A DNA stretch of 64,000 nucleotides, taken from NCBI GenBank assembly GCA_048013815.1, contig CM106586.1, positions 620,001 to 684,000 on the forward strand. The letters are read 5' to 3'. Origin of the DNA: Setoptus koraiensis (taxonomy: Eukaryota > Animalia > Arthropoda). A program made the position numbers and the translations under genes. The notes beneath the pieces are model-generated. The model saw only the letters and a program-made list of their open reading frames with translations, had not been told where the DNA came from and did not search any database. Shown here piece after piece: positions 1-28,115 of the stretch (its first letter is position 1; every line of letters begins with the position of its first letter).

Positions 1-1865
1 TGTGAATATCGTGATATTTGAACATGTTCCCACCTATCCGTTTTGATGATACTGCGTGTGTGTGTTGTGCATGTTGCTCGCTACATTCTGTGCAAGTATG
101 ATCAGAAATCAATTGGTCGTTTTCGAGACATAGAGAAATTTCGGATGACGGATGTCATGTATAGTCATCGATTTCTGAACATGTTCCCACCTATCCGTTT
201 TGATGATACTGCGTGTGTGTGTTGTGCATGTTGCTCGCAACATCATGTGCAAGTATGATCAGAAATCAATTGGTCGTTTTCGAGACAGAAAGAAATTTTG
301 GCTGACGGATGTCATGTGAATATCGTGATATTTGAACATGTTCCCACCTATCCGTTTTGATTATACTGCGTGAATGTGTTGTGCATGTTGCTCGCTACAT
401 TCTGTGCATGTATGATCAGAAATCAATTGGTCGTTTTCGAGACATAGAGAAATTTCGGATGACAGATGTCATGTATAGTCATCGATTTCTGAACATGTTC
501 CCACCTATCCGTTTTGATTATACTGCGTGTGTGTGTTGTGCATGTTGCTCGCAACATTTTGTGCAAGTATGATCAGGAATCAATTTGTCGTTTTCGAGAC
601 AGAAAGAAATTTTGGCTGACGGATGTCATGTGAATATCGTGATATTTGAACATGTTCCCACCTATCCGTTTTGATTATACTGCGTGTGTGTGTTGTGCAT
701 GTTGCTCGCAACATTATGTGCAAGTATGATCAGGGATCAACTGGTCGTTTTCGAGACAGAAAGAAATTTTGGCTGACGGATGTCATGTGAATATCGTGAT
801 ATTTGAACATGTTCCCACCTATCCGTTTTGATTATACTGCGTGAATGTGTTGTGCATGTTGCTCGCAACATTTTGTGCAAGTATGATCAGGAATCAATTT
901 GTCGTTTTCGAGACAGAAAGAAATTTTGGCTGACGGATGTCATGTGAATATCGTGATTTCTGAACATGTTCCCACCTATCCGTTTTGATTATACTGCGTG
1001 AATGTGTTGTGCATGTTGCTCGCTACATTCTGTGCAAGTATGATCAGAAATCAATTGGTCGTTTTCGAGACATAAAGAAATTTCGGCTGACGGATGTCAT
1101 GTGAATATCGTGATTTCTGAACATGTTCCCACCTATCCGTTTTGATTATACTGCGTGTGTGTGTTGTGCATGTTGCTCGCAACATTTTGTGCAAGTATGA
1201 TCAGGAATCAATTTGTCGTTTTCGAGACAGAAAGAAATTTTGGCTGACGGATGTCATGTGAATATCGTGATTTCTGAACATGTTCCCACCTATCCGTTTT
1301 GATGATACTGCGTGTGTGTGTTGTGCATGTTGCTCGCAACATCATGTGCAAGTATGATCAGAAATCAATTGGTCGTTTTCGAGACAGAAAGAAATTTTGG
1401 CTGACGGATGTCATGTGAATATCGTGATATTTGAACATGTTCCCACCTATCCGTTTTGATTATACTGCGTGAATGTGTTGTGCATGTTGCTCGCTACATT
1501 CTGTGCATGTATGATCAGAAATCAATTGGTCGTTTTCGAGACATAGAGAAATTTCGGATGACAGATGTCATGTATAGTCATCGATTTCTGAACATGTTCC
1601 CACCTATCCGTTTTGATGATACTGCGTGTGTGTGTTGTGCATGTTGCTCGCAACATTTTGTGCAAGTATGATCAGGGATCAACTGGTCGTTTTCGAGACA
1701 GAAAGAAATTTTGGCTGACGGATGTCATGTGAATATCGTGATTTCTGAACATGTTCCCACCTATCCGTTTTGATGATACTGCGTATGTGTGTTGTGCATG
1801 TAGCTCGCAACATTATGTGCAAGTATGATCAGGAATCAATTTGTCGTTTTCGAGACAGAAAGAAA
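1..1865. repeat. 157-bp satellite array A (about 12 units, continues off the left edge)
   Basis: gaacatgttcccacctatccgttttgat recurs every 157 bp; near-identical 71-aa ORFs at 43, 357 and 1456 are by-products of the repeat. Confidence 0.97.
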
Positions 1866-2245
1866 CCCATACCGGAAGTTTCATCAAGATCTGGTTGGTG
1901 ACCTAATCGCTAGAACAACCAATTTGGCAATTTCCTTGATCCACTCTCGAGACGTCCCAATGTCTGCGGCATTGAAAGTTTGACCTCCTTCCCGCAATGC
2001 TTAGCGACTTTATGAATCTCCTTTAATGTGTAGCTCAAGGATCTGGGGACGTTGTTGGTAAGTTTAAATAATCTAAGAAACTCATCAAGCGCACAAAGTG
2101 AAGCATAGGCGCACGTATCATTTCTCGATTGCGTTTGATTAATGACTTGAGCTTGAGTGACTCTCACAGATTCAAGAATATCATCCACTAAATGCTGAGT
2201 TATAGCGTCAGAGTTGAGAAAATTCACTGAATCAGTTATGTAAGT

Positions 2246-2698
2246 TCAATCTTGATTTTCATAATTCATGATAATAATCACCAAGAAGGAATGTGTGGCT
2301 TCGAACAAGAAACCGACATCGAAACCGTCTTTGAGAGAATCTTCAGTGGATGTGTGAATGTCTATAAGATGAATTTGATCCGAAAATTCTCTCTTTTCAA
2401 AATCAGTAATGTTTTCCAAACTCAACCATAAACTGACGTTGTGTTCGACTGGTGCGACATGATCTGAAATTCTTCTTCTACCTGCAAGAAAATCGGCAGT
2501 TGTTACCGGTGACTCACCGTATCTTGGGTTGTTCTTATGAAATTCAAGAACCAATTTCGCGCAACCTGGCATCAGATTCTCTATCGATTCCCAGGTTTTC
2601 TCGCCGCCATCCCATAAAATGTTATATAGTGTGAATCGAAATCTTGATTCCGTTACCCTTTCTGCGTCCATTACGTTTATAACTTTTTCGACTTTCGT
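2246..2698 (-). pseudogene. 5'-truncated chromodomain-containing coding fragment
   Basis: Frame reads KVEKVINV...LYNILWDGGEKTWESIENLMPGCAKLVLEF, matching the chromodomain pattern VEkI...Y.vkW.G..TWE..NL..C..L..eF. The frame is closed upstream at the start of the repeat at about 2698. Confidence 0.6.
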
Positions 2699-3700
2699 TT
2701 ATCCTAGCCTCGTCGCTCACTCGGACCACTCAAAATGTTGTCGGAGGGCCCTACGGGCCCTATGTGTGAAGTTTCATCGAAATCTGACTGGGTCACTATT
2801 CTCTACAACACCCGATATATCGGGTATTGTATCTAAGAGCGCCACACTTTTAAATCAATGAAACTCCACACATGGGGCCCGCAGTGCCCCATTAATACGT
2901 TTTGAGTGGTCCGGAAGTGCGGAAACTTCCGGTTCCGGTTTTACACAAACTTCGAGATACGAACTTGAAACTTCATATACTGTAGGATACAAATGTTACA
3001 AATTCAATGTCATCAAATTCAGGTTCGTACGACTTCCGGTTCTCGAAATATCTTCAAAAAGCGGTCTTTCTTCCGCGCAATCGATGGGATGCTGTGAAAT
3101 CTTGGGCTCCACAGTTCGCAGTCTGATCATCTCTTTGCTGGTGTATGGATTGCAGTCACGTGAGCGGAGGGCTGAGCGCGCAGCCCGATACCCGAAACGC
3201 TCATCAACCGTACCCGAAGGGTTCCCGTCGCACGGAATCGTCGCGGGAGCGACGACGGAGATGTGACGGCCTCCAGAATACGAGGCCGCAGGCCGAGTCT
3301 TCAGACCAATCACAAGCCGATCGAAGCTAAGGCCTATTTCTGCCATTCCTTGCTCTATTGGATGCGACTTCATCGAGGAACCGAAAAAAACCCCGAAAAA
3401 ATACCCGCAAATCCCCAAGCGGCTGTCGGGTACCGTTGAACGCCCACTGAGCGGTACCTCGGTTATCTCGATAACGAAGAATTTCCGCACTTCCGGAATA
3501 CCCATTCCGGTATCGGGGTACAGTACCCTACCCAAAAATACCCAAAATACCCCGAAAAAAGTGTGGCGCTGTTAGATACAATAACCGATATATCTTCTCC
3601 CCATCGCTCCTTATATGCGTATCGATATTCAGATATCTAGAGAGCCTTGGTATATATGACCCATTTTCTTCGTTAATTTTGAATTTTTCGGATAACATCT
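2698..3700 (+). mobile_element. Dispersed repeat family A with an internal inverted repeat (possible non-autonomous Helentron-like element); right end undefined
   Basis: About 2720-2782 is an imperfect inverted copy of about 2855-2912. gagtggtccggaagtgcggaaacttcc recurs at about 30525, and about 3450-3590 recurs at about 5320-5460. Begins in a T-run (tttatcctagcc). Confidence 0.5.
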
Positions 3701-3846
3701 CTCTGAGAACTTTGATAAGTTTATCAAAATCATGATCTCTCAAACATTTCTCGGGATAATGCGGCTGGAAATATCCCTTCCGCTTGAATAGACCAGTCTG
3801 TACGAATACAAGTGGTTCGTTGTGTAGTGCGTATGTGCCTTTTTGC

Positions 3847-4899
3847 TAGCGCTTAATTCTAATTAAGCGCTAATGATGTAGTGATGATGGATCCTAAATG
3901 GAGGAGGCAATCCACACACAAGCCTACAATTTTGAGTCACGCCCCCTTTTTAGCACACAGTAAGCTTCAGCTTGGAAGAGACTTAAGTCGCTACGCTCTC
4001 TAGCACACAGTAAGCTACATACTAGTTTGAGACTTAAGTCACTCCGCCTACCTGATACACAATAAGCTACACACTAGGTTAATTTGAGTATTCCACCTCC
4101 CTAGCACACAAAGGACTACGGATTTGATAAGCTACACACAAGCTTAAGTTGAATCGATTTATTAGCACACAACTAGCTACAGATTCGATCGAGAATTAAG
4201 TCACATCTAACTATAAAAATTTAAGACTTTAAGTAAATCCAACTCTATCAATCGATGAGCTGTACGAAGTGGTTGAGCAATCATTAAACACCAGATCTCG
4301 AGTCAGTTAACATAGAATAATACAAGAATGTCTACTAAAATGATGATCAAAAGCCTTAGATATGAGACTAAAAATGCAAAGGTCATAGGTAGAGTTCTTA
4401 GAAAATATCCTTTAAAAGAGCTCACGAATGGAAATTCTTTGTTATCATTCAGAATTCAAGATAAATCCGCCGCGACTGGGTTGTTTTGATAAGATTATTA
4501 GTGAAACTTACTTTGCAGATTGAACATTCAGTCTCCATGTTTAGATGTGAATAAATTTCAAAATCAGAGTATAACAATTACCAAATGACTATTACCAATT
4601 GGATTTGTCCAGACTGTGAGTTGATAATTTGCAGATATCAAATTTCAAATCTCAATAGAGCTAACATGTGTAATGTTTAGATACTTTGACACGAGAATTG
4701 AGAGACTCAAATCTCCATAGGGTTAACTCTGAATCAAGCTGTAGCTTACCGTGTATTAGTGAATGGAGCGACTCAAGTCTCAATCAAGCTGTAGCTTTCT
4801 ATGTGCTAAGGAGGGGGCGTGACTCAAAGTTGTAGGCTTGTGTGTAGATTTCTCCTCCATTACATCAATAGCGCTTAATTAAAATAAAATTAAGCGCTA
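3847..4899. mobile_element. About 1.05-kb foldback-like unit bounded by two inward-facing family-B (HINE) 5' ends
   Basis: Palindrome tagcgcttaatt..aattaagcgcta at 3847-3872 and 4869-4899. The flanking ~100 bp are imperfect inverted repeats (atggaggag..cacacacaagcctacaa..tgagtcacgcccc on both arms). Confidence 0.7.
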
Positions 4900-5299
4900 A
4901 AAATTTGTTGCCGATAGGCCTCCCAGAGCTCAATCAATGATAGATGTTCCAGGGTCTTCAAAAGAGGCTCCGGCTCACAAGTCAGGGTAGATGGCAATCA
5001 AGGGATCTGACAATTCGACAGGCCGGCCTGCACATCGTGGCACCTCCTGAGGGGCGCAGTCCTGAAGTGCGTGCTCAGAATCCTGTCGATGATTCAGCGC
5101 GTCTATGGTCGACCAACGATCCGCAGACGCAGTTTCACTCCCCGCCGCATCCATTGGTCACGCCTCCTAAGTCAAATTACTTTTATTCTGCTCCTGTGGC
5201 CGCTAGGAAGAATCTACCCTCTGTAAATGACCGTCAGTACTACCCCGGATGTGAGTGCGGGATGGTACGGCCGCCCGTACCTCTAATATGCCCAGAAAT

Positions 5300-5480
5300 A
5301 CCCTAAAATACCCTCAAGGCGGCACCTCGGGTATCTCGGGAACGAAGAATTTCCGCACTTCCGGAATGCTTTTTACGATCCCAGGGTATTATACCATAAC
5401 CGAAAATACCAAAAATACCCAAATTGGGCGTGGTCACTATTCGATGGAATAACCAGATGTTTCATTTGCCGTTAAGTTCT
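5300..5480 (+). repeat. Second copy of a family A segment
   Basis: gcggcacctcgggtatctcgggaacgaagaatttccgcacttccggaat matches about 3450-3500. Confidence 0.7.
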
Positions 5481-5569
5481 CACATCATGGGTGACCAATG
5501 GGATGCCAGACGGAGCAACTTTAGAGAATCAACCCGAGATTATGAAGAATATATATTCCTTCTCATCTA

Positions 5570-7010
5570 AAGCCTTCTATTCTAAACGACTGTCCGATGC
5601 TCAAAAGAGGTATACAACATCAGAACAAGAGGCTCTCGCCATAGTCAAGGTCATCAACCACTGGCACTACTACTTGGATAGACATCCCTTTAATATTCGG
5701 ACCGACCACAAACCACTAACATGGCTGCAATCGATCACCAACAAGAACAGGCGTCTATTCAACTGGTCGATCAAGTTATCAGTCCATGATTATAAGGTCG
5801 AATACCTGGCAGGCGAGACCAACATTGAGGCTGACGCATTATCCAGAGCACCAGTCTGTAATCTTGTCACTCTACAAGAAGTCAGAAACGCCCTCAATCG
5901 GTCTGATGAACCGATTCCGGCTCAATCTTTTGAAGAGGATGGAATCATCTATATTAACATAGAAGGAAAACGAAAACTTTTCGTTCCAGAATCCATAAGA
6001 AGAACACTTGTAGCAGAGACTCATAAGCGTTTCGGACATCTGGGAATACGCTCAACCAGTAATATCATCCAACTTAAGTATTACTGGCCAAACATCAACT
6101 CCGACATCAAGCATTTTCTCAACAATTGCGATACTTGCGCAAGATGCAAGAATTACTCTAGGATTAAGAAAGGAGAGCTCCGACAAATACCCGGCATAGC
6201 TCAACCATTGGAGATGTTATCTATGGATACAGTGAGCGGATTCAGAGACTACGGATCACTTAAGACCAACATGACCGTAGTGGTCGATCACGCAACAAGA
6301 TATGCTTGGACATTTGCCTCAAGAAGCATTAAAGATGATCAAGCAATCAACTGTATTCGACAGATAACCCAAGCGGTTGGACCAATCAAAGCCATACTTA
6401 CCGATAGATATCCAGCATACTTCAGCAGAAGATTCAATAGATTCCTCACCAATAAGAACATTGAACACAAGTTCACAACTCCGTATCATCCACAAGCCAA
6501 CGGGATTTGCGAGAGAATCAATCGGACAATCACCAATAAACTGCGATGCCTTAAAACCGACGATCCCAGATCATCATGGGTCAAGCTCCTCAAAATAACT
6601 ACTAAACAATACAACAACACTGTACATGCCGCAACAGGATTTCCACCCAGTTATCCAATGTTTGGAAGATCCACAGACATTATATAAACAATAACCACAA
6701 TTTCCCCCCACTAGAGCAAGCCAGAAGAGAGGCTTTGGAGAATGTACAGAAGTTGCACAATACTAACAAAAACCGACATGACCGGACCGAGGTACCGGTA
6801 GACATCAATGTAGGCGATTGGGTCTATACCAGAAGACCACAACAACTTAACAAAGAGAAGTTGGATAATCCCTACGAAGGGCCATGGTAAGTAGTGAGTA
6901 GAGTCTCATCAACAGTGTTCGAAGTTGCTAAAGGAGACCAGCAGAACAACAAGCCAACAACTTACTTCCATAGCACAATGCTGAAGAAGGCAACAGTCGA
7001 TATGTAAAGT
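5570..7010 (+). mobile_element. Ty3/gypsy pol fragment (RNase H + integrase), 5'-truncated and disrupted
   Basis: ORF 5491-6687 has RNase H motifs (FYSKRL..QKRY..EQEALAI..TDHKPL), integrase HHCC (HKRFGHLG..CDTC) and the D-D-E core (MDTV, TDRYP, NGICERIN). RNase H precedes integrase, the gypsy order. Confidence 0.92.
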
Positions 7011-7179
7011 ATGAAAGCCTAACAGCGCTCTTGGTGGAAGAGCCAGTAATTGTACAGAACTTATAAACGAAACACGCACGAGGACTCCCCTAGTGATGAA
7101 AAGACGAAACATAGCTCAAACACATACTAAGAGTCTCGCTATATCGCGCGCGCATAGATAACTTATATCCAATTGATAA

Positions 7180-7722
7180 GTGATAATTACAGCTCATTAT
7201 CATTACAACACCAAGATGAATTTCAACAACAATATTATAGAAGAGCCATGGTGGCTTATTGACAATCGCCACAACAACAATGGCGAATATTCATCATTTA
7301 TTGGTATGTTGCCACAGGCCACCACAATGATGGGCGACGATTACATAGCCAACAGGAGGCCATTGGCCGAAGAATGGGGCCCGGTTGGACCATATCGGGG
7401 CACACCAGCATCGCCGGACAATCGGATCTAATCCGACCTGTCCACACCGACCCAGGAAGAGGCCTTGGCCATCTTAGCCTGGCTCGAGGAAGAGCCGCCG
7501 GCATGGCCGGAATACGCTCTGTCACCGGAGCCGGCTAGTGAAGCCGACGGGGCCCAAGAAGAGGCCGAAGAAGCCGAATTCGACTCCCCTCCCGAGTCGC
7601 CAACCATAGTTGTGGGATTTCCACCTCGGGAGGGGGAGGGATGTACAGGCACTGCCTGCAACAACAACAACAAGCAACAACAGCTTATCGATTATAACGA
7701 GGACTCTACAGAGTGGCCTTAA
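7180..7722 (+). pseudogene. Extra acidic/Pro-rich ORF between pol and the 3' LTR, split by one in-frame stop
   Basis: ORFs 7180-7431 and 7465-7722 are in the same frame, separated by TAA at 7429-7431. Confidence 0.4.
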
Positions 7723-7924
7723 AGTCACTCTGTAGAGTCCCTCAAAGCACTATCACAGGCTCCACTACAGCCTTAACTCCTCTTATGAAGACCTGCAGTG
7801 GAGTCTGCGACCCCTCTTGGGTCTGCCTTTGGCAGTGCTGCACCGACCCCTATATATTGGGGCAGCACTGCCAGCTGAGCTCACTCTTGTATCTAAGTTC
7901 AGTCAATAAACATCTAAGTTTTAT
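7628..7924 (+). mobile_element. Polypurine tract and truncated gypsy 3' LTR
   Basis: PPT gggagggggaggga (7628-7641) immediately followed by TGT at 7642; TATA-like tatatat at 7851; aataaa at about 7905; cut at 7925 by a HINE 5' end. Confidence 0.75.
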
Positions 7925-9623
7925 TAGCGCTTAATTTTAATTAAGTAGCTATTGATGTGGTTCTGGCAGATACGTTCATTCACGTGGGTAGAACAAATCA
8001 GTGCTTTTTAGCGCTTAATTTTAATTAAGTAGCTATTGGGGTGGTTCTGGCAGATACGTTCATTCACGTGGGTAGAACAAATCAGTGCTTTTTTTAACTA
8101 GAAAAAAATAGCACGGTGAAGGCTGAACTGTGAGAAATAAACTAGATAAATTTAGAACAGTCAAAGCTTACAATGTTGATTAGTTAAATTTAGCACATAG
8201 AATGCTATGCGCGTTCACTTACTAGACGCGATTAGCACGCTCAAAGCTGAGATGCTAACTAGATGAATTTAGCACAGCAGAAGGCTAGCTGTCTTCAATT
8301 CTGATCTAGTGCACTGGAAGCTAGAGGTGTTGAAACTAGCAGATTGTAGAACAGTAGAAGCTACTCAGAACAACTACTGCTTCTCAGCACTGTTGATGCT
8401 ATTGTAGATAAAACTAGACGAGAGTAGCACGCTCAATGCTGCGATGCTAACTAGATGAATCTAGCACAGAGGAAGCCAAGCGGCGTACAATTCGGACTTG
8501 GCGCACGGGAAGCTAGGAGCCTTGTAACTAGAAGATTACAGCACAGCAGAAACTACTCAGTATAACTAGTAAGTCGTTCTAGTATTTGTGATACGCTTAG
8601 TAGTGCTGGGGGTGAGTAGCACAGTTACGGTTAAACTGGGTGACAGAAGTTGCAACTGAATATGAATGATTACCACACAAAGAAGGTTGCGTGTGATCTA
8701 AACATTAGATGAATATTATATCTGAGGGTGAGATGTTTACCAGATGAATTGAGCGTAGCAGGAGAATGGATGCAAACAATCGTTATTATAAACACAGGGA
8801 TATGATTTGTAGATAACTAGGATATTTAATAATTGGACATAGTGTAATAGAATGGACAGATCCGAACGAGGAAAATAAATTGATAATGACGACGATGGGT
8901 GGGAAAGACATAGCGGAGGAAGAAAAGAGAAACAGGAACAATTTCGAATGGATGAGATGCTCTATGCAAATTTTCACGGAATTCTAGGGGTGAGAAAATA
9001 TTCAGAATTCACGATATTCACATAAACATGGGTGTCGGAAAATTTGTGATGCGGCGGAAACAAGGAAGTACGTTCTGATCTAACTTGCACAGATTGACAC
9101 TAGCATTGTATCAGTGCTCTGTGCGAATTTTCACGGAAGTCTTACGGTGAGAACATGTTCAGAAATTCAAGTATTCACATGGACTGAGACATCCGGATAT
9201 TTCCAATGCTACGAAAACAAGCAAGTGCACATCAATGTCACTTGCACAGATAACTATCAGCATTGTACTGGTGCTCTGTGCAAATTTTCACGAAAGTCTT
9301 AAGGTGAGAACATGTTCAGAAATTCAAGTATTCACATGGACTGGGACATCCGGATATTTCCAATGCTGCGAAAACAAGCAAGTGCACATCAATGTCACTC
9401 GCACGGATTGACACAAGCATTGTATTAGTTCACTGTGCACGATAATCTTACTGTTAGAGCATGTTCAGAAATCAAGCTCTCCGCAAGACGGTCAACAATG
9501 ATTGCACACAGCTTCACACCTCTTCTGTCATCGTTATATGTTATCTCATACTCGCTTCTCTATTTCAACGGTACCATCTGAAAAATTAAGCGCTCGAGAT
9601 ACTGATCTAATCAGTATCACTTG
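7925..9623 (+). mobile_element. Complete non-autonomous Helentron-type element (HINE family B) with a tandemly duplicated 84-bp 5' end and about 3 internal 157-bp repeats
   Basis: 5' T-run + AGCGCTTAATT at 7925 and 8009. 3' subterminal inverted copy AATTAAGCGCT (9584-9594), perfect 9-bp stem gatactgat-cta-atcagtatc (9598-9618), then TT. ggtgagaacatgttcagaaattc occurs at 9146 and 9303 (157 bp apart). Confidence 0.82.
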
Positions 9624-9636
9624 TTACATTACCGAA

Positions 9637-11085
9637 TTATCGAATGAGTGTCAATCAATGGTTTAAGGGTTATTTTCAGACATAGCTCGATCAGTTGCCG
9701 TTGGTGGTATGCGTTGATTCTTTTTAATATCTTTGATGTGATGAAATTGAGCCTCTCATAGAGTGATGCTTTGTCTATAAGATCTTGTAATAGATCACAG
9801 CACAATTTGTCACATTTTTCTTTGGTTAATGGCGCTGATTCATGATTATAATCAGTAAGATCCAAGTTCCAAAGATCAGAAGATGAAAATCAATCTATCA
9901 TTCTGATGTAGATCATTGTGTCACTAACATTTAGCTGGGATTCTTTTGAGATATTTTCGAGATAAATGCAGTTGTGATGCGAAATCTTCTCCATAGTAAA
10001 ACACCGTGCTGAAGTTTGTTGTTCATTCAATGCTATAATCACAAGTTTATGCAAGTCATGTTATCAGTATCGTTCCATTGATGTCGTAGTCCCGACTTAC
10101 GAGGCTTCACAAGCGCACGGAGTGTTCTCAAAGCATCGAGTCGATCGCATAGTAACAAATCATTTTGAATAATAGCTCGCCTTCCATTAGATCGAAAACA
10201 AGCATGAACTTTGACGCGGTATACGGAGCACTGAATAAGAATCGATCAGTTATCGACCCGCCGGGCACATATTTCTCTGTTGTTAGGCGCGTGTTATCGA
10301 CTGTGCTTATGCTTTGTCATAACAAAGATCGTGTTCTTAATACTTTCCTAATTGTTGAGCAACAGTTGCCCTCTTTCCGGAAAAGGTTAGACGATCCCGC
10401 CTTCTCTGAACACGCTAGTTTTAACGAGTGAGGTGTGTGTTCAAATGGTTGCATGAAACCAGTTTCACGAGACGACATTTGTATCATTGTTTTATTTATT
10501 ATATTCATCTAATTTTTCATTCTTATTGTATATTTATTTATTATCATGATGTCCTCTGCCCCAGCTACAACGACAACCGCACCCTCAGGCGGACCCTCAG
10601 CCAGATCTACAGCTAGACCAGTCAGACACACAGCCGGACCAGTGCCCAGACCCACAGCGCCCGAAGCTGCCGGAAGCAGTAGGCGCCGCAGAGGCCGCCC
10701 CAGAGGCAGTGGCAGAGGTGGCAGCAGCAGCAGAGGCGTAGGCAGCGGCGGAGCCACACACACAGCAGCAACCACAACAACAACAAACCAAACCACAGCC
10801 ACACCAGCGAGCGCCGAGGGCGAAATAACAACACAGCAGACGGAAGGTGAGTATATCTCAATTTCATCTCGTATATTGACTATAAACAGATGAGTTATTT
10901 TTTTATCGAATGAGTGTCAATCAATGGTTTAAGGGTTATTTTCAGACATAGCTCGATCAGTTGCCGTTGGTGGTATGCGTTGCTTCTTTTTAATATCTTT
11001 GATGTGATGAAATTGAGCCTCTCATAGAGTGATGCTTTGTCTATAAGATCTTGTAATAGATCACAGCACAATTTGTCACATTTTT
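9637..11085. repeat. 183-bp direct repeats (9637-9819 and 10903-11085) enclosing about 1.1 kb
   Basis: ttatcgaatgagtgtc...aatttgtcacattttt occurs twice, 1266 bp apart; I see one mismatch. Confidence 0.95.
10546..10846 (+). CDS. Putative exon encoding an AT-hook, Thr/Ala/Gly/Ser-rich peptide
   Basis: GC-rich ORF starting at ATG; RRRRGRPRG at 10681-10707; ends at a strong donor AG|GTGAGT (10847). No downstream exon found. Confidence 0.45.
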
Positions 11086-11614
11086 AGCGCTTAATTTTAA
11101 TTAAGCGCTAATGATGTAGTGATGTTGGATCCTATAAATCACGCATGAATATCCACGCACGGTATGATGGTGGATACTAAATTCGTGCATTTCACAGTAT
11201 ATTCACCAGTTGTGCTATGGTGATTCACGCGCTGTGTGCTTGTGAATACTCCGACTTTGTATGCCAGTGAATATTCACGTACCGATTTATTCGTGGATAT
11301 TCACAGTTTTCGATCTTTAGAGTCACGCGCTGTGTGCTTGCAAACATTAGCACTAGTATAATCAGTGCTTAGTGAGTGTGTAGGTTGAAATGTGCTTCGG
11401 AGGTGGGAAGTACACTCAAGCTTGAGACTCGATAGTTCGTCCACCTCCCAAACACACATTTTTAGGAGGTGGATTGAATTTTGAGTCTCGGGCTCATGCA
11501 GAGGTTGATGTATAGTGAGGAGGTGGATCGATGCTATAACGAGATAGGTTAAGCTATTTCAAATAGCGTGGAGTGACAACTTAAGTCACTCCTCCTCCCT
11601 AGCACACAGTAACC
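11085..11614 (+). mobile_element. HINE family B 5' arm running into the gap
   Basis: Palindrome 11085-11110 followed by atgatgtagtgatg as at 3872. Comparison with the uninterrupted copy at 9811-9819 shows insertion after a T-run. Confidence 0.75.
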
Positions 11615-12114
11615 NNNNNNNNNNNNNNNNNNNNNNNNNNNNNNNNNNNNNNNNNNNNNNNNNNNNNNNNNNNNNNNNNNNNNNNNNNNNNNNNNNNNNN
11701 NNNNNNNNNNNNNNNNNNNNNNNNNNNNNNNNNNNNNNNNNNNNNNNNNNNNNNNNNNNNNNNNNNNNNNNNNNNNNNNNNNNNNNNNNNNNNNNNNNNN
11801 NNNNNNNNNNNNNNNNNNNNNNNNNNNNNNNNNNNNNNNNNNNNNNNNNNNNNNNNNNNNNNNNNNNNNNNNNNNNNNNNNNNNNNNNNNNNNNNNNNNN
11901 NNNNNNNNNNNNNNNNNNNNNNNNNNNNNNNNNNNNNNNNNNNNNNNNNNNNNNNNNNNNNNNNNNNNNNNNNNNNNNNNNNNNNNNNNNNNNNNNNNNN
12001 NNNNNNNNNNNNNNNNNNNNNNNNNNNNNNNNNNNNNNNNNNNNNNNNNNNNNNNNNNNNNNNNNNNNNNNNNNNNNNNNNNNNNNNNNNNNNNNNNNNN
12101 NNNNNNNNNNNNNN
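11615..12114. other. Assembly gap (500 N)
   Basis: Run of N. Confidence 1.
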
Positions 12115-15100
12115 TCGCTAGTTTTTTCTACATTCGTGCTGCTTACTATCATCAACAACCATAGCAAGTCTTATCAGCGTGCACTTGCCCGTTCACTCTG
12201 CGGAGAAATTCTTCGAACGCCCAAGTTGCGATCAATACCCTCATTTTTGAACATGTTCTCACCACTAAAAATCGCTAGTTTTTTCTACATACGTGCTGCA
12301 CACAGTCATCAACAATCAGAGCGAGTCTAATCAAAAGTTTATTGCCCGTTCACCCTGTAGAGAAATTTTTCGAACGCCCAAGTCGGTATGAATACTGCGA
12401 TTTTTGAACATGTTCTCACCACTAAAAATCGCTAGTTTTTTCTACATACGTGCTGCACACAGTCATCAACAATCAGAGCGAGTTTCATCAAAAATTTATT
12501 GCCCGTTCACCCTGCAGAGAAATTTTTCGAACGCCCCAATCGATATGAATACTGTGATTTTTGAACATGTTCTCACCGTAAAAAATCGCTAGTTTTTTCT
12601 ACATTCGTGCTGCTTACTATCATCAACAACCATAGCAAGTCTTATCAGCGTGCACTTGCCCGTTCACTCTGCAGAGAAATTTTTCGAACGCCCCAGTCGA
12701 TATGAATACTGTGATTTTTGATCATGTTCTCACCTCTAGAATTTTTTAGTTTTCTCTACATGCATGCTACACACTGTGATCAACAATCAGAGCGAGTCTC
12801 ATCAAAACTTACTTGCCCGTTCACTCTGCAGAGAAATTTTTCGAACGCCCCAGTCGATATGAATACTGTGATTTTTGTTCATGTTCTCACCTCTAGAATT
12901 TTTTAGTTTTCTCTACATGCATGCTACACACTGTGATCAACAATCAGAGCGAGTTTCATCAAAACGTACTTGCCCGTTCACTCTGCAGAGAAATTTTTCG
13001 AACGCCCCAGTCGATATGAATACTGTGATTTTTGAACATGTTCTCACCGTAAAAAATCGCTAGTTTTTTCTACATTCGTGCTGCTTACTATCATCAACAA
13101 CCATAGCAAGTCTTATCAGCGTGCACTTGCCCGTTCACTCTGCAGAGAAATTTTTCGAACGCCCCAGTCGATATGAATACTGTGATTTTTGTTCATGTTC
13201 TCACCTCTAGAATTTTTTAGTTTTCTCTACATGCATGCTACACACTGTGATCAACAATCAGAGCGAGTCTCATCAAAACGTACTTGCCCGTTCACTCTGC
13301 AGAGAAATTTTTCGAACGCCCCAGTCGATATGAATACTGTGATTTTTGAACATGTTCTCACCGTAAAAAATCGCTAGTTTTTTCTACATTCGTGCTGCTT
13401 ACTATCATCAACAACCATAGCAAGTCTTATCAGCGTGCACTTGCCCGTTCACTCTGCAGAGAAATTTTTCGAACGCCCCAGTCGATATGAATACTGTGAT
13501 TTTTGAACATGTTCTCACCCCTAGAATTTTTTAGTTTTCTCTACATGCATGCTACACACTGTGATCAACAATCAGAGCGAGTTTCATCAAAACTTACTTG
13601 CCCGTTCACCCTGCAGAGAAATTTTTCGAACGCCCCAGTCGATATGAATACTGTGATTTTTGAACATGTTCTCACCGTAAAAAATCGCTAGTTTTTTCTA
13701 CATTCGTGCTGCTTACTATCATCAACAACCATAGCAAGTCTTATCAGCGTGCACTTGCCCGTTCACTCTGCAGAGAAATTTTTCGAACGCCCCAGTCGAT
13801 ATGAATACTGTGATTTTTGTTCATGTTCTCACCTCTAGAATTTTTTAGTTTTCTCTACATGCATGCTACACACTGTGATCAACAATCAGAGCGAGTCTCA
13901 TCAAAACGTACTTGCCCGTTCACTCTGCAGAGAAATTTTTCGAACGCCCCAGTCGATATGAATACTGTGATTTTTGAACATGTTCTCACCGTAAAAAATC
14001 GCTAGTTTTTTCTACATTCGTGCTGCTTACTATCATCAACAACCATAGCAAGTCTTATCAGCGTGCACTTGCCCGTTCACTCTGCAGAGAAATTTTTCGA
14101 ACGCCCCAGTCGATATGAATACTGTGATTTTTGAACATGTTCTCACCCCTAGAATTTTTTAGTTTTCTCTACATGCATGCTACACACTGTGATCAACAAT
14201 CAGAGCGAGTCTCATCAAAACGTACTTGCCCGTTCACTCTGCAGAGAAATTTTTCGAACGCCCCAGTCGATATGAATACTGTGATTTTTGAACATGTTCT
14301 CACCGTAAAAAATCGCTAGTTTTTTCTACATTCGTGCTGCTTACTATCATCAACAACCATAGCAAGTCTTATCAGCGTGCACTTGCCCGTTCACTCTGCA
14401 GAGAAATTTTTCGAACGCCCCAGTCGATATGAATACTGTGATTTTTGAACATGTTCTCACCTCTAGAATTTTTTAGTTTTCTCTACATGCATGCTACACA
14501 CTGTGATCAACAATCAGAGCGAGTCTCATCAAAACGTACTTGCCCGTTCACTCTGCAGAGAAATTTTTCGAACGCCCCAGTCGATATGAATACTGTGATT
14601 TTTGAACATGTTCTCACCGTAAAAAATCGCTAGTTTTTTCTACATTCGTGCTGCTTACTATCATCAACAACCATAGCAAGTCTTATCAGCGTGCACTTGC
14701 CCGTTCACTCTGCAGAGAAATTTTTCGAACGCCCCAGTCGATATGAATACTGTGATTTTTGAACATGTTCTCACCGTAAAAAATCGCTAGTTTTTTCTAC
14801 ATTCATGCTGCTTACTATCATCAACAACCATAGCAAGTCTTATCAGCGTGCACTTGCCCGTTCACTCTGCAGAGAAATTTTTCGAACGCCCCAATCGATA
14901 TGAATACTGTGATTTTTGAACATGTTCTCACCGTAAAAAATCGCTAGTTTTTTCTACATTCGTGCTGCTTACTATCATCAACAACCATAGCAAGTCTTAT
15001 CAGCGTGCACTTGCCCGTTCACTCTGCAGAGAAATTTTTCGAACGCCCCAGTCGATATGAATACTGTGATTTTTGAACATGTTCTCACCGTAAAAAATCG

Positions 15101-16595
15101 CTAGTTTTTTCTACATTCGTGCTGCTTACTATCATCAACAACCATAGCAAGTCTTATCAGCGTGCACTTGCCCGTTCACTCTGCAGAGAAATTTTTCGAA
15201 CGCCCCAATCGATATGAATACTGTGATTTTTGAACATGTTCTCACCGTAAAAAATCGCTAGTTTTTTCTACATTCGTGCTGCTTACTATCATCAACAACC
15301 ATAGCAAGTCTTATCAGCGTGCACTTGCCCGTTCACTCTGCAGAGAAATTTTTCGAACGCCCCAGTCGATATGAATACTGTGATTTTTGAACATGTTCTC
15401 ACCGTAAAAAATCGCTAGTTTTTTCTACATTCGTGCTGCTTACTATCATCAACAACCATAGCAAGTCTTATCAGCGTGCACTTGCCCGTTCACTCTGCAG
15501 AGAAATTTTTCGAACGCCCCAGTCGATATGAATACTGTGATTTTTGAACATGTTCTCACCGTAAAAAATCGCTAGTTTTTTCTACATTCGTGCTGCTTAC
15601 TATCATCAACAACCATAGCAAGCCTCATCAGCGTGCACTTGCCCGTTCACTCTGCAGAGAAATTTTTCGAACGCCCCAGTCGATATGAATACTGTGATTT
15701 TTGATCATGTTCTCACCCCTAGAATTTTTTAGTTTTCTCTACATGCATGCTACACACAGTTATCAACAATCAGAGCGGGTCTCATCAAAACGTACTTGCC
15801 CGTTCACTCTGCAGAGAAATTTTTCGAACGCCCCAGTCGATATGAATACTGTGATTTTTGAACATGTTCTCACCCCTAGAATTTTTTAGTTTTCTCTACA
15901 TGCATGCTACACACAGTTATCAACAATCAGAGCGAGTTTCATCAAAACTTACTTGCCCGTTCACCCTGCAGAGAAATTTTTCGAACGCCCAAGTCGGTAT
16001 GAATGTTGTGATTTTTGAACATGTTCTCACCCCTAGAATTTTTTAGTTTTCTCCACATGCTTGCTACACACTGTGATCAACAATCAGAGCGAGTTTCATC
16101 AAAACTTACTTGCCCGTTCACCCTGCAGAGAAATTTTTCGAACGCCCAAGTCGGTATGAATGTTGTGATTTTTGAACATGTTCTCACCGTAAAAAATCGC
16201 TAGTTTTTTCTACATTCGTGCTGCTTACTATCATCAACAACCATAGCAAGTCTTATCAGCGTGCACTTGCCCGTTCACTCTGCAGAGAAATTTTTCGAAC
16301 GCCCCAGTCGATATGAATACTGTGATTTTTGTTCATGTTCTCACCCCTAGAATTTTTTAGTTTTCTCTACATGCATGCTACACACTGTGATCAACAATCA
16401 GAGCGAGTTTCATCAAAACTTACTTGCCCGTTCACCCTGCAGAGAAATTTTTCGAACGCCCCAATCGATATGAATACTGTGATTTTTGAACATGTTCTCA
16501 CCGTAAAAAATCGCTAGTTTTTTCTACATTCGTGCTGCTTACTATCATCAACAACCATAGCAAGTCTTATCAGCGTGCACTTGCCCGTTCACTCT
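12115..16595. repeat. 157-bp satellite array B (about 28 units, two main unit types)
   Basis: gaacatgttctcacc recurs every 157 bp. Units beginning ccgtaaaaaatcgctag and cc(t/c)ctagaatttttt alternate in part of the array. Confidence 0.97.
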
Positions 16596-17337
16596 CACCA
16601 TAAATTCGAATTTTCTAATCCCGTAGGTATAAATCGAATCTCCATAGGGATAACATTGTTAACGTTTAGATACTTCAACATAGAGAACAAAATGAAAATC
16701 GTCAAAGTCGAATCTCCATAGAGATAACATTGTTAACTTATTTTATCTACAATAGCATTAACAGTGCTAAGAAGCAGTAGTTATTCTGAGTAGCCTCTAC
16801 TGTACTACAATCTTCTAGTTCTGACGCCTCTAGCTTCCAGTGCACTAAATCCGAATTGTATACAGCTAGCCTTCTGCTGTGCTAAATTCATCTAGTTAGC
16901 ATCACAGTATTGAGCGTGCTACTCTCGTCTAGTTTTATCTACAATAGCATTAACAGTACTGAGAAGCACTAGTTATTCTGAGTAGCCTCTACTGTACTAC
17001 AATCTTCTAGTTCTGACGCCTCTAGCTTCCAGTGTACTAAATCTGCATTGTATACAGCTAGCCTTCTGCTGTGCTAAATTCATCTAGTTAGCATCTCAGC
17101 TTTGAGCGTGCTAATCGCGTCTAGTGAGTGAACGCGCATAGCATTCTGTGTGCTAAATTCAACTAAACAACAATGTAAGCTTTGAGTGTTCTAAATTTAT
17201 CTAGTTTATTTCTCACAGTACAGCTTTCACCGTGCTATTTTTTTCTAGTTGAAAAAAGCACTGATTTGTTCTACCCACGTGAATAAACGTAGCACCCAGA
17301 CCCATCCCAATAGCTGCTTAATTAAAATTAAGCGCTA
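16596..17337 (-). mobile_element. HINE family B 5' arm (minus strand) leading directly into satellite array B
   Basis: The reverse complement of about 16750-17337 matches about 8009-8600, including a 191-bp internal duplication; terminal palindrome at 17311-17337. Confidence 0.85.
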
Positions 17338-17665
17338 AAAAATAGCGAGAAAAGTCGCGCGGTCGAGATGAGAATCTCGAACTGTATCTCAGCTCTTTCG
17401 AGGTGAAACGGGGCCCCAAAGTTGAAGTTCTGAGAAAAGTGGGCGTGCCTGGTGAACGAGAAACCAGAAACAGAAATAAACCAGATTTCTGGCCTCACCT
17501 GATGGGGACCCTCCCAACTACACCCTTTTGTGAGAATCGAAGACCAGAAATGAAAACACCCCGAAATGAGACAAATTTGATGTAACTATAGCGCCAATGT
17601 ATTTCCAACTATGCTCCCTGGCAGCGTCTACATTATTGTATGATGATGATAATGTTTGCCTACTC

Positions 17666-18133: not shown

Positions 18134-18529
18134 TTTTTCTTGTATCTTGGATCGCTATAGATACCCGTAACTTATGAGAACTAAGACTTTTCACTACAAT
18201 CTTTGATTCTGATGATCGGTGATATTAGGCCGGGCGAGCGAAGCGAGCCGGTCTTTACAGATGCATTTTCGTTCTTTCCCCCTTTTGCTGCAAAAAAGTC
18301 CATAGAGTTTTCCCCTTCATCGTGTTGTCGGAAATCTGTGTGCTGCAGTGGAGAAAAAGTGTGCTTTCCCCCCTGTGCAGCAAAAAAGTCCATAGAGTTT
18401 TCCCCTTCTGAAAGTCAGCTGTGGTGTTCTCGTTCGTTCCCTTCGAGGCGTGGAGTGCCGCGGTGGGAGACGGGAGGGGGCGGGACTGGGAGGGTGGGAG
18501 GCGGGGAGCGTGCGCTGCGCAGCACAACA

Positions 18530-18815
18530 ACAGCTGCAGCAGTAGCAATGATTATGATAATAATGATGATAATGATAATAGTGATAGTAGTAATAATAAT
18601 AGTAGCAGTAGTGATAATAATAGTAGTAGTAGTAATAACAATAATAACAGTAGTAGTAATAATAACAGTAGTAGTAATAATAACAGTAGTAGTAGTAGTA
18701 GTACTAGTAGTAATAGCAGTAGCAGTAGTAATAGTAATAACAATAACAACAAAAACAAACAAAAAAAAATAAATAAAAAATAAAAAAAAATAAAAAAAAC
18801 AACAACAACAACAGC
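18530..18815. repeat. (AGT/AAT)n microsatellite and A-rich tract in the Helentron 5' region
   Basis: Direct inspection; source of several low-complexity ORF calls. Confidence 0.95.
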
Positions 18816-18842
18816 AGTATGCCTCAACATCAAGATAAGCGC

Positions 18843-19760
18843 GGATGTGAACCCAAAATGAGTTCTTTCCCGCAGCGCGGATGTGAACCCGCAATGAGTT
18901 CTTTCCCGCAGCGCCTCACAGGATGTGAACCCGTTATGAGTTCTTTCCCTAATTATACCGGATGTGAACCCGCAATGAGTTCTTTCCCGCAGCGCCTCAC
19001 AGGATGTGAACCCGTTATGAGTTCTTTCCCTAATTATACCGGATGTGAACCCGCAATGAGTTCTTTCCCGCAGCGCCTCACAGGATGTGAACCCGTTATG
19101 AGTTCTTTCCCTAATTATACCGGATGTGAACCCTCTATGAGTTCTTTCCCGCAGCGCCTCACAGGATGTGAACCCGTTATGAGTTCTTTCCCTAATTATA
19201 CCGGATGTGAACCCTTTATGAGTTCTTTCCCGCAGCGCCTCACAGGATGTGAACCCGTTATGAGTTCTTTCCCTAATTATACCGGATGTGAACCCGCAAT
19301 GAGTTCTTTCCCGCAGCGCCTTACAGGATGTGAACCCATTATGAGTTCTTTCCCTAATTATACCGGATGTGAACCAGAAATGGGTTCTTTCCCGCAGCGC
19401 CTTACAGGATGTGAACCCAGAATGGGTTCTTTCCCTGATTATACCGGATGTGAACCGGAAATGGGTTCTTTCCCGCAGCGGATGTGAACCGGAAATGGGT
19501 TCTTTCCCTAATTATATCATAGATGGATGTGAACCCGAAACGGGTTCTTTCCCGCAGTGCCTCACAGGAAGTGAACCCAGAATGGGTTCTTTCCCTGATT
19601 ATACCGGATGTGAACCTTCAATGAGTTCTTTCCCGCAGCGCCTCACAGGATGTGAACCCTTAATGAGTTCTTTCCCTAATTATACCGGATGTGAACCTTC
19701 AATGAGTTCTTTCCCGCAGCGCCTCACAGGATGTGAACCAGAAATGGGTTCTTTCCCTGA
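18843..19760 (+). repeat. Minisatellite of 23 units with 29-bp core ggatgtgaacc-N6-gagttctttccc (mostly alternating 42/39 bp)
   Basis: Units start at 18843, 18879, 18921, 18960 ... 19729; they translate as GCEPxMSSFP repeats. Confidence 0.95.
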
Positions 19761-22700
19761 TTACAGAATAGGTGGGAGCGACTCCTTGATTGGCGTTTTC
19801 CTGCAGAACCTTGCGCGATGCGACCCTGAAATTAGCCTTCCCCTGCTGCGCTTAAGAAGATGTGGACTCGAATTCGGTTCTTTCCTTCGTATGAGCAACG
19901 ATGATCTTGTATTTGAATTGGGTTCTATATTTGATGATCATCCGTGTTCGAGCTTCAATTCTCTTGCGTCAATCGTTGCTCATGGCGGTGGATATTCTCC
20001 AGATTCGCCGCACGATTCTTCAGATGAAGATCGTCATCCAGCTGAAAAGCCATTCTCTCGCCCACTCTCTAGGGCTGAGAAGATGAAATTGAAACGCGCC
20101 GATCCCGTTTTCAGAGCTGCTGAGAACGAGCGAAGGCGTGCCAACTATAAAGATAACGTTTCCGCTCATGATTACAAAGCGAAACAGATCAGAGCAAAGC
20201 GCTCCGATCCGGAGTTCGTTGCTGCTGAGCTTGCTCGCAAACGTGAATTGTACCAGAAAAATCCACATCCGACCATTGAGCGTATCAAAGAAAGACGTTC
20301 TGATTCGGTAAATTATTCACTAGAACTCGAGCGTAAAAAGTCATTGTATCATAGTGATAAATCGACAGCTGTTTGTGATTCAGATCCCTCTGTTGGCGAT
20401 GAGAGGCCGCAGCGAATTAGAACACAAAACAAGCGATACAATGATTATTACTTAGATAAGGACATCGAGTACCACAAGAAGGTTAGACTCGATCCTGAAT
20501 TCCGAAAGGCTGAGCTTGCAAAGTTGCAAAAGAAGCGCGAGAACGTAGCCTTTCGTGATAGAGAAGAGTTTGTCAAAAGGCGTTCTTACTTCGTTAAAAA
20601 AGTGAAATCATGGAACGACTTGGGCTTCTGTTTCTCTGGTTTAGATATTAATGAGGTTGACCAGAGACATTTGATAAAGATGAATGATGCTATAAGCACT
20701 TATTATCATGATTTGGCTCAGAGTTTTTTCCATGTATGCGTTGTGTGCTCTGGAACGTTTCGCGAATGTAGCCTAAAAAAATTTGACATTGAAGAATTCA
20801 GATCCGATATCGGTCAGGAATTCTTCGACAAGGTTGTGTCAGTATTTGATGAGCCGTTCCAAATATGTGGCACATGCTATTCCTACATTTTGAGGAAGAA
20901 AGTTCCCCCATTATGTATGAATAACGGGTTACGTTACGTTGCTTTACCAGAGTTTATTCGCACTCTCAACCCAATAGAACAGATTCTAGTATCTAATGTG
21001 ATACAATTTCGAAAAATTGTTGAGAATCGCCCTGAACACAATTCATGGATGCGTACTCACCCACATTTGTTCGGTAAGCCATCGATCATTAATGTACAGC
21101 TCGATCCTTCGGATGCCTTTTCAAAGGTTCAGAGTATTCCCCGTGCGCCGGATGAGTCGCTCTCGTGTGTTGTACGTCTTTTTAAACGACAACAATTTGC
21201 CGACATGAATCTGCATCCTCATGTACAAGGATTTATCGATCATGAAAAACTCGATAAAGCTGCTGCCTGGCTTGTTAAAACGCCCTTATATATTAAGGAT
21301 GGCATAAAATTCAAAGGCAAGGCTACCACGCAGAAAATTGCTGAAAAGTTCAATTCTGAGCGTGTTATTGATATGGAACTTGGTAAGGATATTCCTGATG
21401 AATTTCCCGATGCGATGTATCCACCCCAAGAGACATTCATCACACGGTTACCAGGTGCACCACTTGACATAGCTCCTGCCGAAGACCGACCTGCTATCAG
21501 CGCTCTCTTTGGTACCACTATCGATGAACGTCCATTTCCAACTATATTTGGTGGTCATCCTTATCCTAGTCCACCGCCCGCTGGGTCATCTTGGCCGAAA
21601 TTAACTTTGAGTCAGAGACTGAAGTTTGAAATGCGCAACGTCAGCACTCAACACAGACCTTGTGTGTATGTACTCTTTGGTGCTGCCAAAAAGTTGGCCA
21701 ATCAATTATATAGTGCGAGTTATACGGCGACAAGGATCTCTACCAAGACAAATGTTTTAACGGTTCAAGATGTTTTAGATCAGAAACATAGAAATGTTTT
21801 GATCAAAAACGATATGATGTTTACTTTGTATAAGCAGGTCCCCAACACACCTCAGTATTGGATGGCGCAGAGTAAAAAGTTACTCTTGGCTGTCTATGCC
21901 TTCGGTCCTCCTACCCTTTTCATGACCATAACAATTAACGAATCTGATGAGGCTGAGCTCTTAAGGTTACTCTACAGATTTAGGCACAATGTTTGGTTGA
22001 GTCAAAAAGATGTGCTTGAAGGTTTATCGCACTCTGAGAAAGCCGACTTGTTTCTCAATGATCCTGTGACTCTTTCTAGGTATTTCGAACTTAGGCAATC
22101 ATGCTTGATGAAATTCTTGAAGGATAAATATGGTGCTTTCGCTGGGTATAGAATTTATAAGTATTATTCACGGATCGAGTATCAACATAGGGGTTCACCT
22201 CATGCTCACATGATTTTCTGGTTAGAAGGTGCGCCGACATTCGATAAGGATGAGCCCTCATCTATACCCTCATGCGTTGATTTTATCGATAGGCACATAA
22301 CTACTCGTAGCGATCTATGTGATGAGCAAGTTGCCAAGCGCCAGTTCCACAAGCACACTAGAACTTGCCTAAAAATTAAGCATGGTAAAGTTGGTTGCAG
22401 ATTCAATCTACCCAGATATCCTATGGCCCAAACTTGCATTTTAGGTCCATTGATGGAAGGTGAGGTAGATAAAGCTGATATCCCCTCTGTGCGTGGACGT
22501 CTGTTAAAGATAAAGAATCTGCTCAAAGAGTGGACCCGTCCAATTCCTGGTGGTTATTTCCAGAGACAATCTGCATTGACATTTGATCAGTTTCTTGAAA
22601 AATTAGAAATGTCTCATGATCAATACATAGAAGCAATTAGATTGGGTCTTGAGAAACATAAAACTCTGTATAAATGTCAACCTTGCGATATAATGACTAA

Positions 22701-26976: not shown

Positions 26977-27048
26977 TATTAAAGTCTCCGCCTGTGTTTC
27001 GATATATGATGAACTTGAGATGTATCTAGGCCCAGATTGATGCAAATT

Positions 27049-27315
27049 GGAAGTGAACCTTCGACGGGTTCTTTCCCAGTCGCGCAAAATTGGAAGTGAA
27101 CCCTCGACGAGTTCTTTCCCAGTCGCGCAAAATTGGAAGTGAACCCTCGACGAGTTCTTTCCCAGTCGCGCAAAATTGGAAGTGAACCCTCAACGAGTTC
27201 TTTCCCAGTCGCGCAAAATTGGAAGTGAACCCTCAACGAGTTCTTTCCCAGTCGCGCAAAATTGGAAGTGAACCCTCAACGGGGCACTATTCGCTACAAC
27301 AACCGAGTTCTTTCC
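27049..27315 (+). repeat. 43-bp minisatellite (6 units) sharing the 29-bp core with the 5' array
   Basis: ggaagtgaacc-N6-gagttctttccc at 27049, 27092, 27135, 27178 and 27221, plus an interrupted unit at 27264. Confidence 0.93.
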
Positions 27316-27344
27316 CAGACGATAACAGAGTTGAGATAGATGAA

Positions 27345-27890
27345 GTTTAGGGTGGAAGATTCAGCATCAACGAAGTTTTTAGTCAGAGTGTACGTGGCGG
27401 AAGTAGATATATAGCATCATTATTTAGTCATCATCAGCAGTGGTTACGGTCGAGTCATGCGGAGTTAAGTTAGTTTAAGTTTGGGGTGGAAGATTCAGCA
27501 TCAACGAAGTTTTTATTTAGTCAGAGTGTACGTGGCGGAAGTAGATATATAGCATCATTATTTAGTCATCATCAGCAGTGGTTACGGTCGAGTCATGCGG
27601 AGTTAAGTTAGTTTAAGTTTGGGGTGGAAGATTCAGCATCAACGAAGTTTTTATTTAGTCAGAGTGTACGTGGCGGAAGTAGATATATAGCATCATTATT
27701 TAGTCATCATCAGCAGTGGTTACGGTCGAGTCATGCGGAGTTAAGTTAGTTTAAGTTTGGGGTGGAAGATTCAGCATCAACGAAGTTTTTATTTAGTCAG
27801 AGTGTACGTGGCGGAAGTAGATATATAGCATCATTATTTAGTCATCATCAGCAGTGGTTACGGTCGAGTCATACGGAGTTCAGCATCAAC
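27345..27890. repeat. 138-bp tandem repeat (about 4 units)
   Basis: ggtggaagattcagcatcaacgaag at 27351, 27485, 27623 and 27761. Confidence 0.95.
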
Positions 27891-28115
27891 AAAGTCTTTG
27901 GTAGGAGAACATGGAGCAAGATTGGATACTTGAAAATAAAATATATCAAGCAATAAGTTATATGCACAAATTCGTTTCTAGCACCACCTTGTTCGCACTT
28001 TTTTGTTGGTCTGGTAGTTGTTTTAGTGGTTGGTCGTTTGTCGTTTGGTTTGGTTTGGTTTGTTTATTTTATCGGTCGGTTGCCTTGTTGGTTTGTTGTT
28101 GGCGGTTTTATTTGG

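Follow-up and report, generated by a model that had tools for sequence, protein, structure and literature searches.

Internal 157-bp repeats of non-autonomous Helentrons and two tandem arrays that probably grew from them in a small arthropod genome

A stretch of 64,000 nt of contig CM106586.1 (C2) of Setoptus koraiensis, referred to here as the window, holds two tandem arrays of a 157-bp repeat, array A and array B, and between them a complete non-autonomous Helentron (HINE) with a few 157-bp units in its own interior. The question raised by this locus is whether the arrays and the internal units are one repeat and, if so, whether the arrays grew out of the transposon or the repeat came to it from elsewhere. 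We consider it probable that the internal 157-bp repeats of HINEs grew in place at particular insertions. Tandem arrays were called with Tandem Repeats Finder, and the ends of the elements were surveyed in the window and 20 fetched loci (21 loci in all); L001 is the locus upstream of the window, in which base 9061 is C2:619061.

Tandem Repeats Finder describes array A as 11.9 copies of 157 bp with 92% matches, array B as 28.5 copies of 157 bp or, alternatively, 14.3 copies of 314 bp (93%), and the internal units of the element (C type, 9083-9439) as 2.3 copies of 157 bp; by motif and phase the last comprise three units (9477-9321, 9328-9172 and 9171-9015) and a degenerate fourth. All three repeat the palindrome GAACATGTT with an exact period of 157 bp. 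Their consensus monomers align without gaps across all 157 columns, in a single phase and a single orientation, with identities of 54-55% (A/B), 56% (A/C) and 60-64% (B/C). When compared with 300 shuffles in both orientations, taking the best phase, the real pairs lie at z = 12.6-14.9 from a shuffle mean of 35-36% and above a maximum of 43%, while in reverse orientation the score is at the shuffle level. This alignment had been set beforehand as the test of a claim made in a preliminary description of the stretch, that the two arrays and the units inside the element form one family of 157 bp. Since the identities lie beyond all shuffles, the alignment shows the A, B and C monomers to be homologous, judged on their sequence, and the claim holds.

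The family is more varied than the three subfamilies then distinguished, since its monomers fall into at least five types (A, B1, B2, C and D). In the orientation of the + strand of arrays A and B, the D type can be aligned without gaps to the A, B and C types, with identities of 44-52% (z = 5.7-12.4). The five types are 44-64% alike except for one almost invariant 25-bp box: in the first 25 columns of the monomer, 17 positions are the same in all five types, compared with 17% of the remaining columns, and none of 5000 permutations matched this value. The box includes the perfect palindrome GAACATGTTC, and a second, smaller conserved block occupies columns 76-96.

The complete element begins with a T run and the 12-mer AGCGCTTAATTT, its 5' subterminal inverted repeat (subTIR), followed by a short complementary repeat, and it ends with the complement of AGCGCTTAATTT, CGA, a hairpin with a 9-bp stem, and CACTTG. 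In the window the 12-mer is present 12 times, where 0.34 occurrences would be expected. Across the 21 loci, the T run and subTIR were found at about 60 5' ends, and the subTIR, hairpin and CACTTG at about 45 3' ends, where the complement of AGCGCTTAATTT sits about 33 bp from the terminus; the flanks are unrelated to one another. The 5' end is preceded by T, usually 4-7 T or TTATT, CACTTG is usually followed by T, and no target-site duplication was seen at the ends in these loci. The hairpin has folding z values of -2.2 to -6.5, and its variants between copies keep the pairing (G..C versus A..T at the stem base). A single paralogous empty site backs a 5' junction (9819/9820 versus 11085/11086), although it does not settle the exact TT cut. 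This site belongs to a 183-bp direct duplicate (99.5%; 9637-9819 and 10903-11085) that brackets an otherwise unique stretch of 1083 bp; the 5' end of an element that we call X2 interrupts the second copy precisely at its T run, and the first copy is the empty site.

Canonical Helitrons have the form 5' TC...CTRR 3' and insert between A and T, whereas the ends found here are a T run followed by AGCGC... and ...CACTTG, with T flanks. The structure of Helentrons and HINEs was defined by Thomas et al. 2014 (PMC4067079), first in a mite, by palindromic subTIRs, a 3' palindrome, T strings, a TT or T-rich target and optional central repeats, and the same structure was used to classify oyster elements (PMC7492417). 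By this published end structure, the assignment of the elements of the region to HINEs is supported, with the 157-bp units as their central repeats, as the preliminary description had supposed.

Array A had been taken for a minus-strand member of the same plan as the complete element, and in this respect the description has to be revised. A different arm, the X arm, with the same T run and subTIR, begins at C2:619061, 940 bp ahead of the window (L001 9061-10000); next come 1.7 D units and then, from window base 5, array A. Since the X arm and the D units lie directly upstream, array A, from its context, is part of an X-type element on the + strand. A complete short element of this type (L012 4680-3424) consists of the X arm, two D units and the canonical 3' subTIR and hairpin. 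In element sense, X-type units read ...TGAACATGTTCYCACC..., and the units of Y-type elements, the type to which the complete element of the window belongs, read as its complement, so that the repeat module is, by this reading, inverted between the X and Y families, which share their termini. Outside the window, coordinates alone place a run of at least 7-8 D-type units, spaced 157 bp apart, at C2:730488-731508, beside a canonical 3' tail of the X type, so that the D type, too, has been expanded at one locus.

Array B adjoins, within one contig, a 5' arm that is the inverted homologue of the Y arm of the complete element (8005-8568 against 17341-16778, 89% over 564 bp), as had been noted from the outset. 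Within the array, B1/B2 dimers flank a run of B2 units alone (14594-15692); the two types are 83% alike, 12 B2 monomers are 100% identical, the B1 monomers are 92-100% alike, and the monomers at both edges are more diverged. Both types are found at other loci with 95-97% identity, and the B2 units of the window are identical to each other, which indicates that the variants predate array B and that the array is a young local amplification. The two monomers next to the assembly gap match the rest of the array at 83-89%; as such divergence is seen at array edges, array B may end soon inside the gap. The two sides of the gap are different kinds of sequence, the left flank being the + strand 5' arm of another element, from 11081, with no 157-bp repeat, and the right flank starting in the middle of an array B unit. 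Array B therefore stands between two 5' arms that point inward, one at 11081 (+) and the other at 17341 (-). Table 1 compiles the coordinates of the features.

Table 1. Coordinates of the arrays, elements and element parts. Positions are those of the window unless a contig is named.
Feature	Position	Strand	Details
Array A, 11.9 A-type units, assigned as expanded central repeat of an X-type HINE	5..1865	+	monomers about 95% to consensus
Extra 5' terminus, 84-bp tandem duplicate, before the complete element	7921..8004	+	7921-8009 versus 8005-8093 at 97%
Complete non-autonomous Helentron, Y arm, C-type units	8005..9626	+	terminus about 9626
Complete element: T run and 12-bp subTIR	8010-8021	+	complementary inverted repeat present
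Complete element: 192-bp repeats	8221-8568	+	
Complete element: spacer	8569-8900	+	
Complete element: 3.3 C units	8958-9477		by motif and phase
Complete element: 3' subTIR	9583-9594		
Complete element: hairpin, 9-bp stem, 3-nt loop	9598-9618		folds as DNA
5' arm of X2-type HINE	11081..11614	+	90% to X arm; fully palindromic subTIR; runs into gap, points to array B
Assembly gap, 500 N	11615..12114	.	hides junction of X2 arm and array B
Array B, at least 28.5 units	12115..16595	-	strand in element sense; Tandem Repeats Finder, monomer comparison
5' arm of B-bearing element	16596..17341	-	89% inverted copy of 8005-8568
B-bearing arm: T run and subTIR	17336-17325	-	unique part down to 17127
B-bearing arm: 192-bp repeats, two copies	17125-16741	-	83-bp repeat remnant at 16737-16631
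X-type element, 0.6 units	C2:436390-434926		
X-type element, 2.6 units	C2:560059-561999		
X-type element, 6.6 units	C1:17351811-17349471		
X2-variant element, 7.4 units	C2:24474034-24476553		

The number of units per copy was derived by combining the coordinates of X 5' starts, A units and X-type 3' tails; the longest A array and other A and B loci outside the sample were analysed by coordinates only. Complete X-type copies, having both a 5' start and a 3' tail, carry 0.6, 1.2, 1.6, 2.6, 2.6, 3.6, 6.6 and 7.4 units, and complete Y-type copies with C units carry 1.4-5.8. X arms that match the one ahead of the window at 99% identity occur with 2.6, 6.6 and at least 11.9 units, which bears out the early observation that the same arms occur with few and with many units; since these arms are nearly identical and their unit counts differ, the changes in number, by this measure, are recent. 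B units were found elsewhere in stretches of 2.3 and 3.8 (L017), 4.2 (C2:593334-594020) and at least 7.4 units (L009), the last array being interrupted by a transposon of 968 bp and bordered by a gap. At L017, a second, 5'-truncated arm comes after the B units, and after it a single 3' end; segments of 1617 bp and 559 bp beside the B units of L017 and L009 gave no match in the sample. A 27-unit A array (C2:391660-395859) has a canonical 3' tail 296 bp further on, the same spacing as in a 2.6-unit copy.

On the scale of the assembly, which comprises 48.8 Mb in two pieces and represents a very small arthropod genome, the conserved box TGAWCATGTTCYCACC occurs 164 times, and it does not occur in the reversed control. 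These 164 intact units amount to about 26 kb, or about 0.05% of the assembly; about 40% of them sit in the two arrays of the window and the 27-unit array, and the longest arrays have 27-29 units. Classical satellites form long homogeneous arrays, make up a sizeable fraction of the genome and are usually heterochromatic. The arrays described here are short and satellite-like and constitute no major satellite, and the word satellite, as first applied to them, overstates their scale. Several gaps of 500 N adjoin 157-bp arrays, so the true array lengths may exceed the assembled ones. Such gaps recur at or inside HINE copies and 157-bp arrays (L009 634-1133, L020 5105-5604, L006, L007, L018 and window 30552-31051), one of them cutting a 5' subTIR in the middle of its motif, and both kinds of sequence may be under-represented in the assembly.

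A candidate autonomous partner lies just upstream of the window (L001 8432..3417, - strand), where an intact open reading frame (ORF) of 1671 aa matches Helitron_like_N (1e-24) and PIF1 helicase (2e-26). This RepHel ORF is preceded by the Y arm, with its unique part and 192-bp repeats, and followed by an 83-bp tandem repeat, which also follows the arm in many non-autonomous copies and is present as a remnant between the arm and array B. Having the same arm and a remnant of the same repeat, the B-bearing copy looks like a deletion derivative of the L001 RepHel Helentron, and the 1671-aa RepHel gene is predicted to be the likely driver of transposition. The 192-bp repeats of the 5' arm vary from 1.8 to about 3 copies, and the 83-bp repeats after the ORF from 1.3 to about 8.5 (window 8221-8568 and 16741-17125; L001 2849-3267; L003, L004 and L005). 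An autonomous Helentron inside the window (18225-29862) was considered as the partner and rejected, its termini (GGCCGGGCGAGC...) being unrelated.

In the course of events that we favor, mobile HINE copies would carry about 1-7 units of the central repeat and would be transposed by the RepHel gene upstream of the window, which shares the 5' arm and the 83-bp post-ORF repeat with the B-bearing copy. At two insertions the repeat would then have grown in place, to 11.9 units within an X-type element on the + strand and to at least 28.5 units within a Y-type element on the - strand. Unequal exchange or replication slippage between tandem units would be the most likely means of growth, as suggested by the dimeric higher-order pattern, the identical central B2 block and the diverged array edges. 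Several observations weigh against this account. Array A is truncated on its 3' side, where unrelated transposon sequence interrupts it at 1865, within a unit. The array of 27 units at C2:391660 is not callable as a complete element, since no X-type 5' start within reach turned up in a pattern search upstream. That the B2 units are perfectly identical could stem in part from assembly polishing. The B-bearing element shows no 3' end, which would be hidden by the gap, and no clean B-type 3' end was found at any B locus examined; of the claim that array B follows the plan of the complete element, the union with the 5' arm stood, and the remainder is faced by two convergent 5' arms with a gap between them. 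In the RepHel copy the first 99 bases are missing and the 3' side is non-canonical. An AP-endonuclease domain at the RepHel C-terminus is the mark that separates Helentrons from Helitron2 or proto-Helentrons, and here both hits given by the C-terminal 247 aa, Exo_endo_phos_2 at 21.8 bits (E = 1.8e-4) and Exo_endo_phos at 17.6 bits (E = 3.5e-3), fall below the Pfam cut-offs; a PDB sequence search with this C-terminus gave no useful match. Finally, the data are compatible both with repeats born within the element and with repeats captured from a pre-existing one.

On a reading by capture, a tandem repeat of 157 bp already present in the host would have been taken up repeatedly by Helentron derivatives as 'filler DNA', and the long arrays would be its remnants or relatives. 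The opposite orientation of homologous units to the termini in X-type and Y-type elements, the nesting of A units within D units, the different arm-to-B junctions in the window and at L017, and the detection of HINE sequence on one side only of the 27-unit array all fit this explanation, and the oyster literature discusses both scenarios (PMC7492417; PMC12628747). All arrays examined touch parts of HINEs, however, no large free-standing array was found among the 164 intact units of the genome, and the graded series of unit counts stands on arms that are otherwise 99% identical, so that we hold capture to be unlikely. The same degree of doubt applies to aberrant rolling-circle replication, a mechanism reviewed in PMC12628747, in which the 3' terminator is lost or read through and concatemers are inserted, the arrays being long on arrival. 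Multiple 5' ends with one 3' end do occur, as in the 84-bp duplicated 5' terminus (7921-8093) and in the B units and truncated arm of L017, and there are tandems joining a 3' end to a 5' end. The repeated unit of arrays A and B, however, is the 157-bp monomer or the 314-bp dimer and not a truncated element, and identity is highest in mid-array and falls toward the edges, as expected for exchange in place.

The transposons themselves could be read in another way, as foldback derivatives, or derivatives resembling miniature inverted-repeat transposable elements, of a cut-and-paste DNA transposon with inverted ends, and not as Helentrons. The 5' ends of the X and Z types are fully palindromic and the element at 3848-4898 has inverted ends of about 100 bp, although palindromic subTIRs have already been described as a feature of the mite HINEs (PMC4067079). 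The ends are asymmetric, with hairpin and CACTTG at the 3' end only, the flanks are T-rich without a visible target-site duplication, and the only coding partner with a shared arm is RepHel; this explanation is very improbable and was rejected. Growth in place of the internal repeats of HINEs is the reading that we retain.

For DINE-1/DINE-TR1 of Drosophila and for oysters and other bivalves, it is established that HINE central repeats turn into satellite-like arrays (PMC7492417; PMC12628747); the process is known from flies and bivalves, and the present case extends it to another lineage and leaves the general picture unchanged. In the mite Metaseiulus occidentalis, HINE-Mo and Helentron-Mo (PMC4067079) share with our elements the palindromic subTIRs of 12-15 bp, the 3' palindrome, the T strings at the boundaries, the T-rich or TT target and the optional central tandem repeats, and their non-autonomous copies are likewise deletions of a RepHel-bearing partner. 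The elements described here differ from HINE-Mo in belonging to another sequence family, in the graded copy-number series that reaches 27-29 units, and in the occurrence of the repeat in both orientations in two arm families. As in Drosophila DINE-1/DINE-TR1, according to the accounts of Dias et al. 2015 given in PMC12628747 and PMC7492417, the central repeats also occur as expanded satellite-like arrays; in those accounts the Drosophila arrays are of true satellite scale and lie in heterochromatin, whereas about 26 kb are assembled here, and the core and microsatellite module that they give for DINE-1 was not seen here.

A further likeness is to Cg_HINE and the Pacific oyster's Cg170/HindIII satellite (PMC7492417; PMC12628747), in the monomer length of 140-180 bp, the number of units in an element, mostly no more than 5, and the longest assembled array of 29 units, as well as in the modular combining of flanks with repeats, in two repeat types within one element and in one-sided 'intermediate' arrays in transposon graveyards. 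At these oyster 'graveyard' loci (PMC12628747), one-sided arrays, differing array orientations and two repeat types within one element have been described. In contrast to the 11 oyster elements of PMC7492417, which keep one orientation of the array relative to the flanks, the repeat is inverted here between the X and Y families; and no autonomous partner has been tied to the oyster elements, whereas the RepHel copy described here shares the arm. The presence of one repeat in both orientations, in two arm families with common termini, is a detail beyond the oyster survey, and the difference is small. A candidate driver gene, mobile copies with graded unit counts and two young arrays can be traced here on the sequence, which makes this locus a compact and well-resolved example of the internal repeats of a rolling-circle transposon turning into tandem arrays.

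The almost invariant 25-bp box of the monomer may be a protein-binding site, for the Rep of the element or for a host factor, which would make the repeat a preferred and exchangeable cargo, moved either way round between Helentron families and prone to array growth or to the seeding of chromatin; we offer this as a speculation with little chance of proving right. In the X arm, L001 9130-9285 (C2:619130-619285; homologous part at 11150-11300 of the window) contains GTGRATA eight times against 0.17 expected, and several of these copies build the 12-bp palindrome GTGRATATYCAC. At their ends the A, B and C monomers have the half-site-like CATGTGAATA, and the sites of the X arm and the half-sites of the monomers could form a candidate set of binding sites.

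Some further arrangements involve the ends of the elements. An inverted 3' hairpin and subTIR recurrently abuts a Y-type 5' subTIR, giving hairpins at both ends (L001 2459-2495, L007 about 7222 and L002 about 3881), and one such structure occupies the expected 3' end of the autonomous copy. The 1051-bp element at 3848-4898 of the window, with ends that are inverted repeats of about 100 bp, each opened by a fully palindromic subTIR, and an interior with repeats of about 60 bp, resembles two HINE 5' ends placed head to head, as in a foldback-like derivative; 5' starts of this kind (X/Z type) number 68 in the genome. Downstream of array A there are a repeat family of 968 bp (2822-3586) and a pol fragment from an LTR (long terminal repeat) retrotransposon, an ORF of 398 aa (5491-6687, + strand) with RNase H and integrase domains, both of which mark the region as a dense transposon nest.

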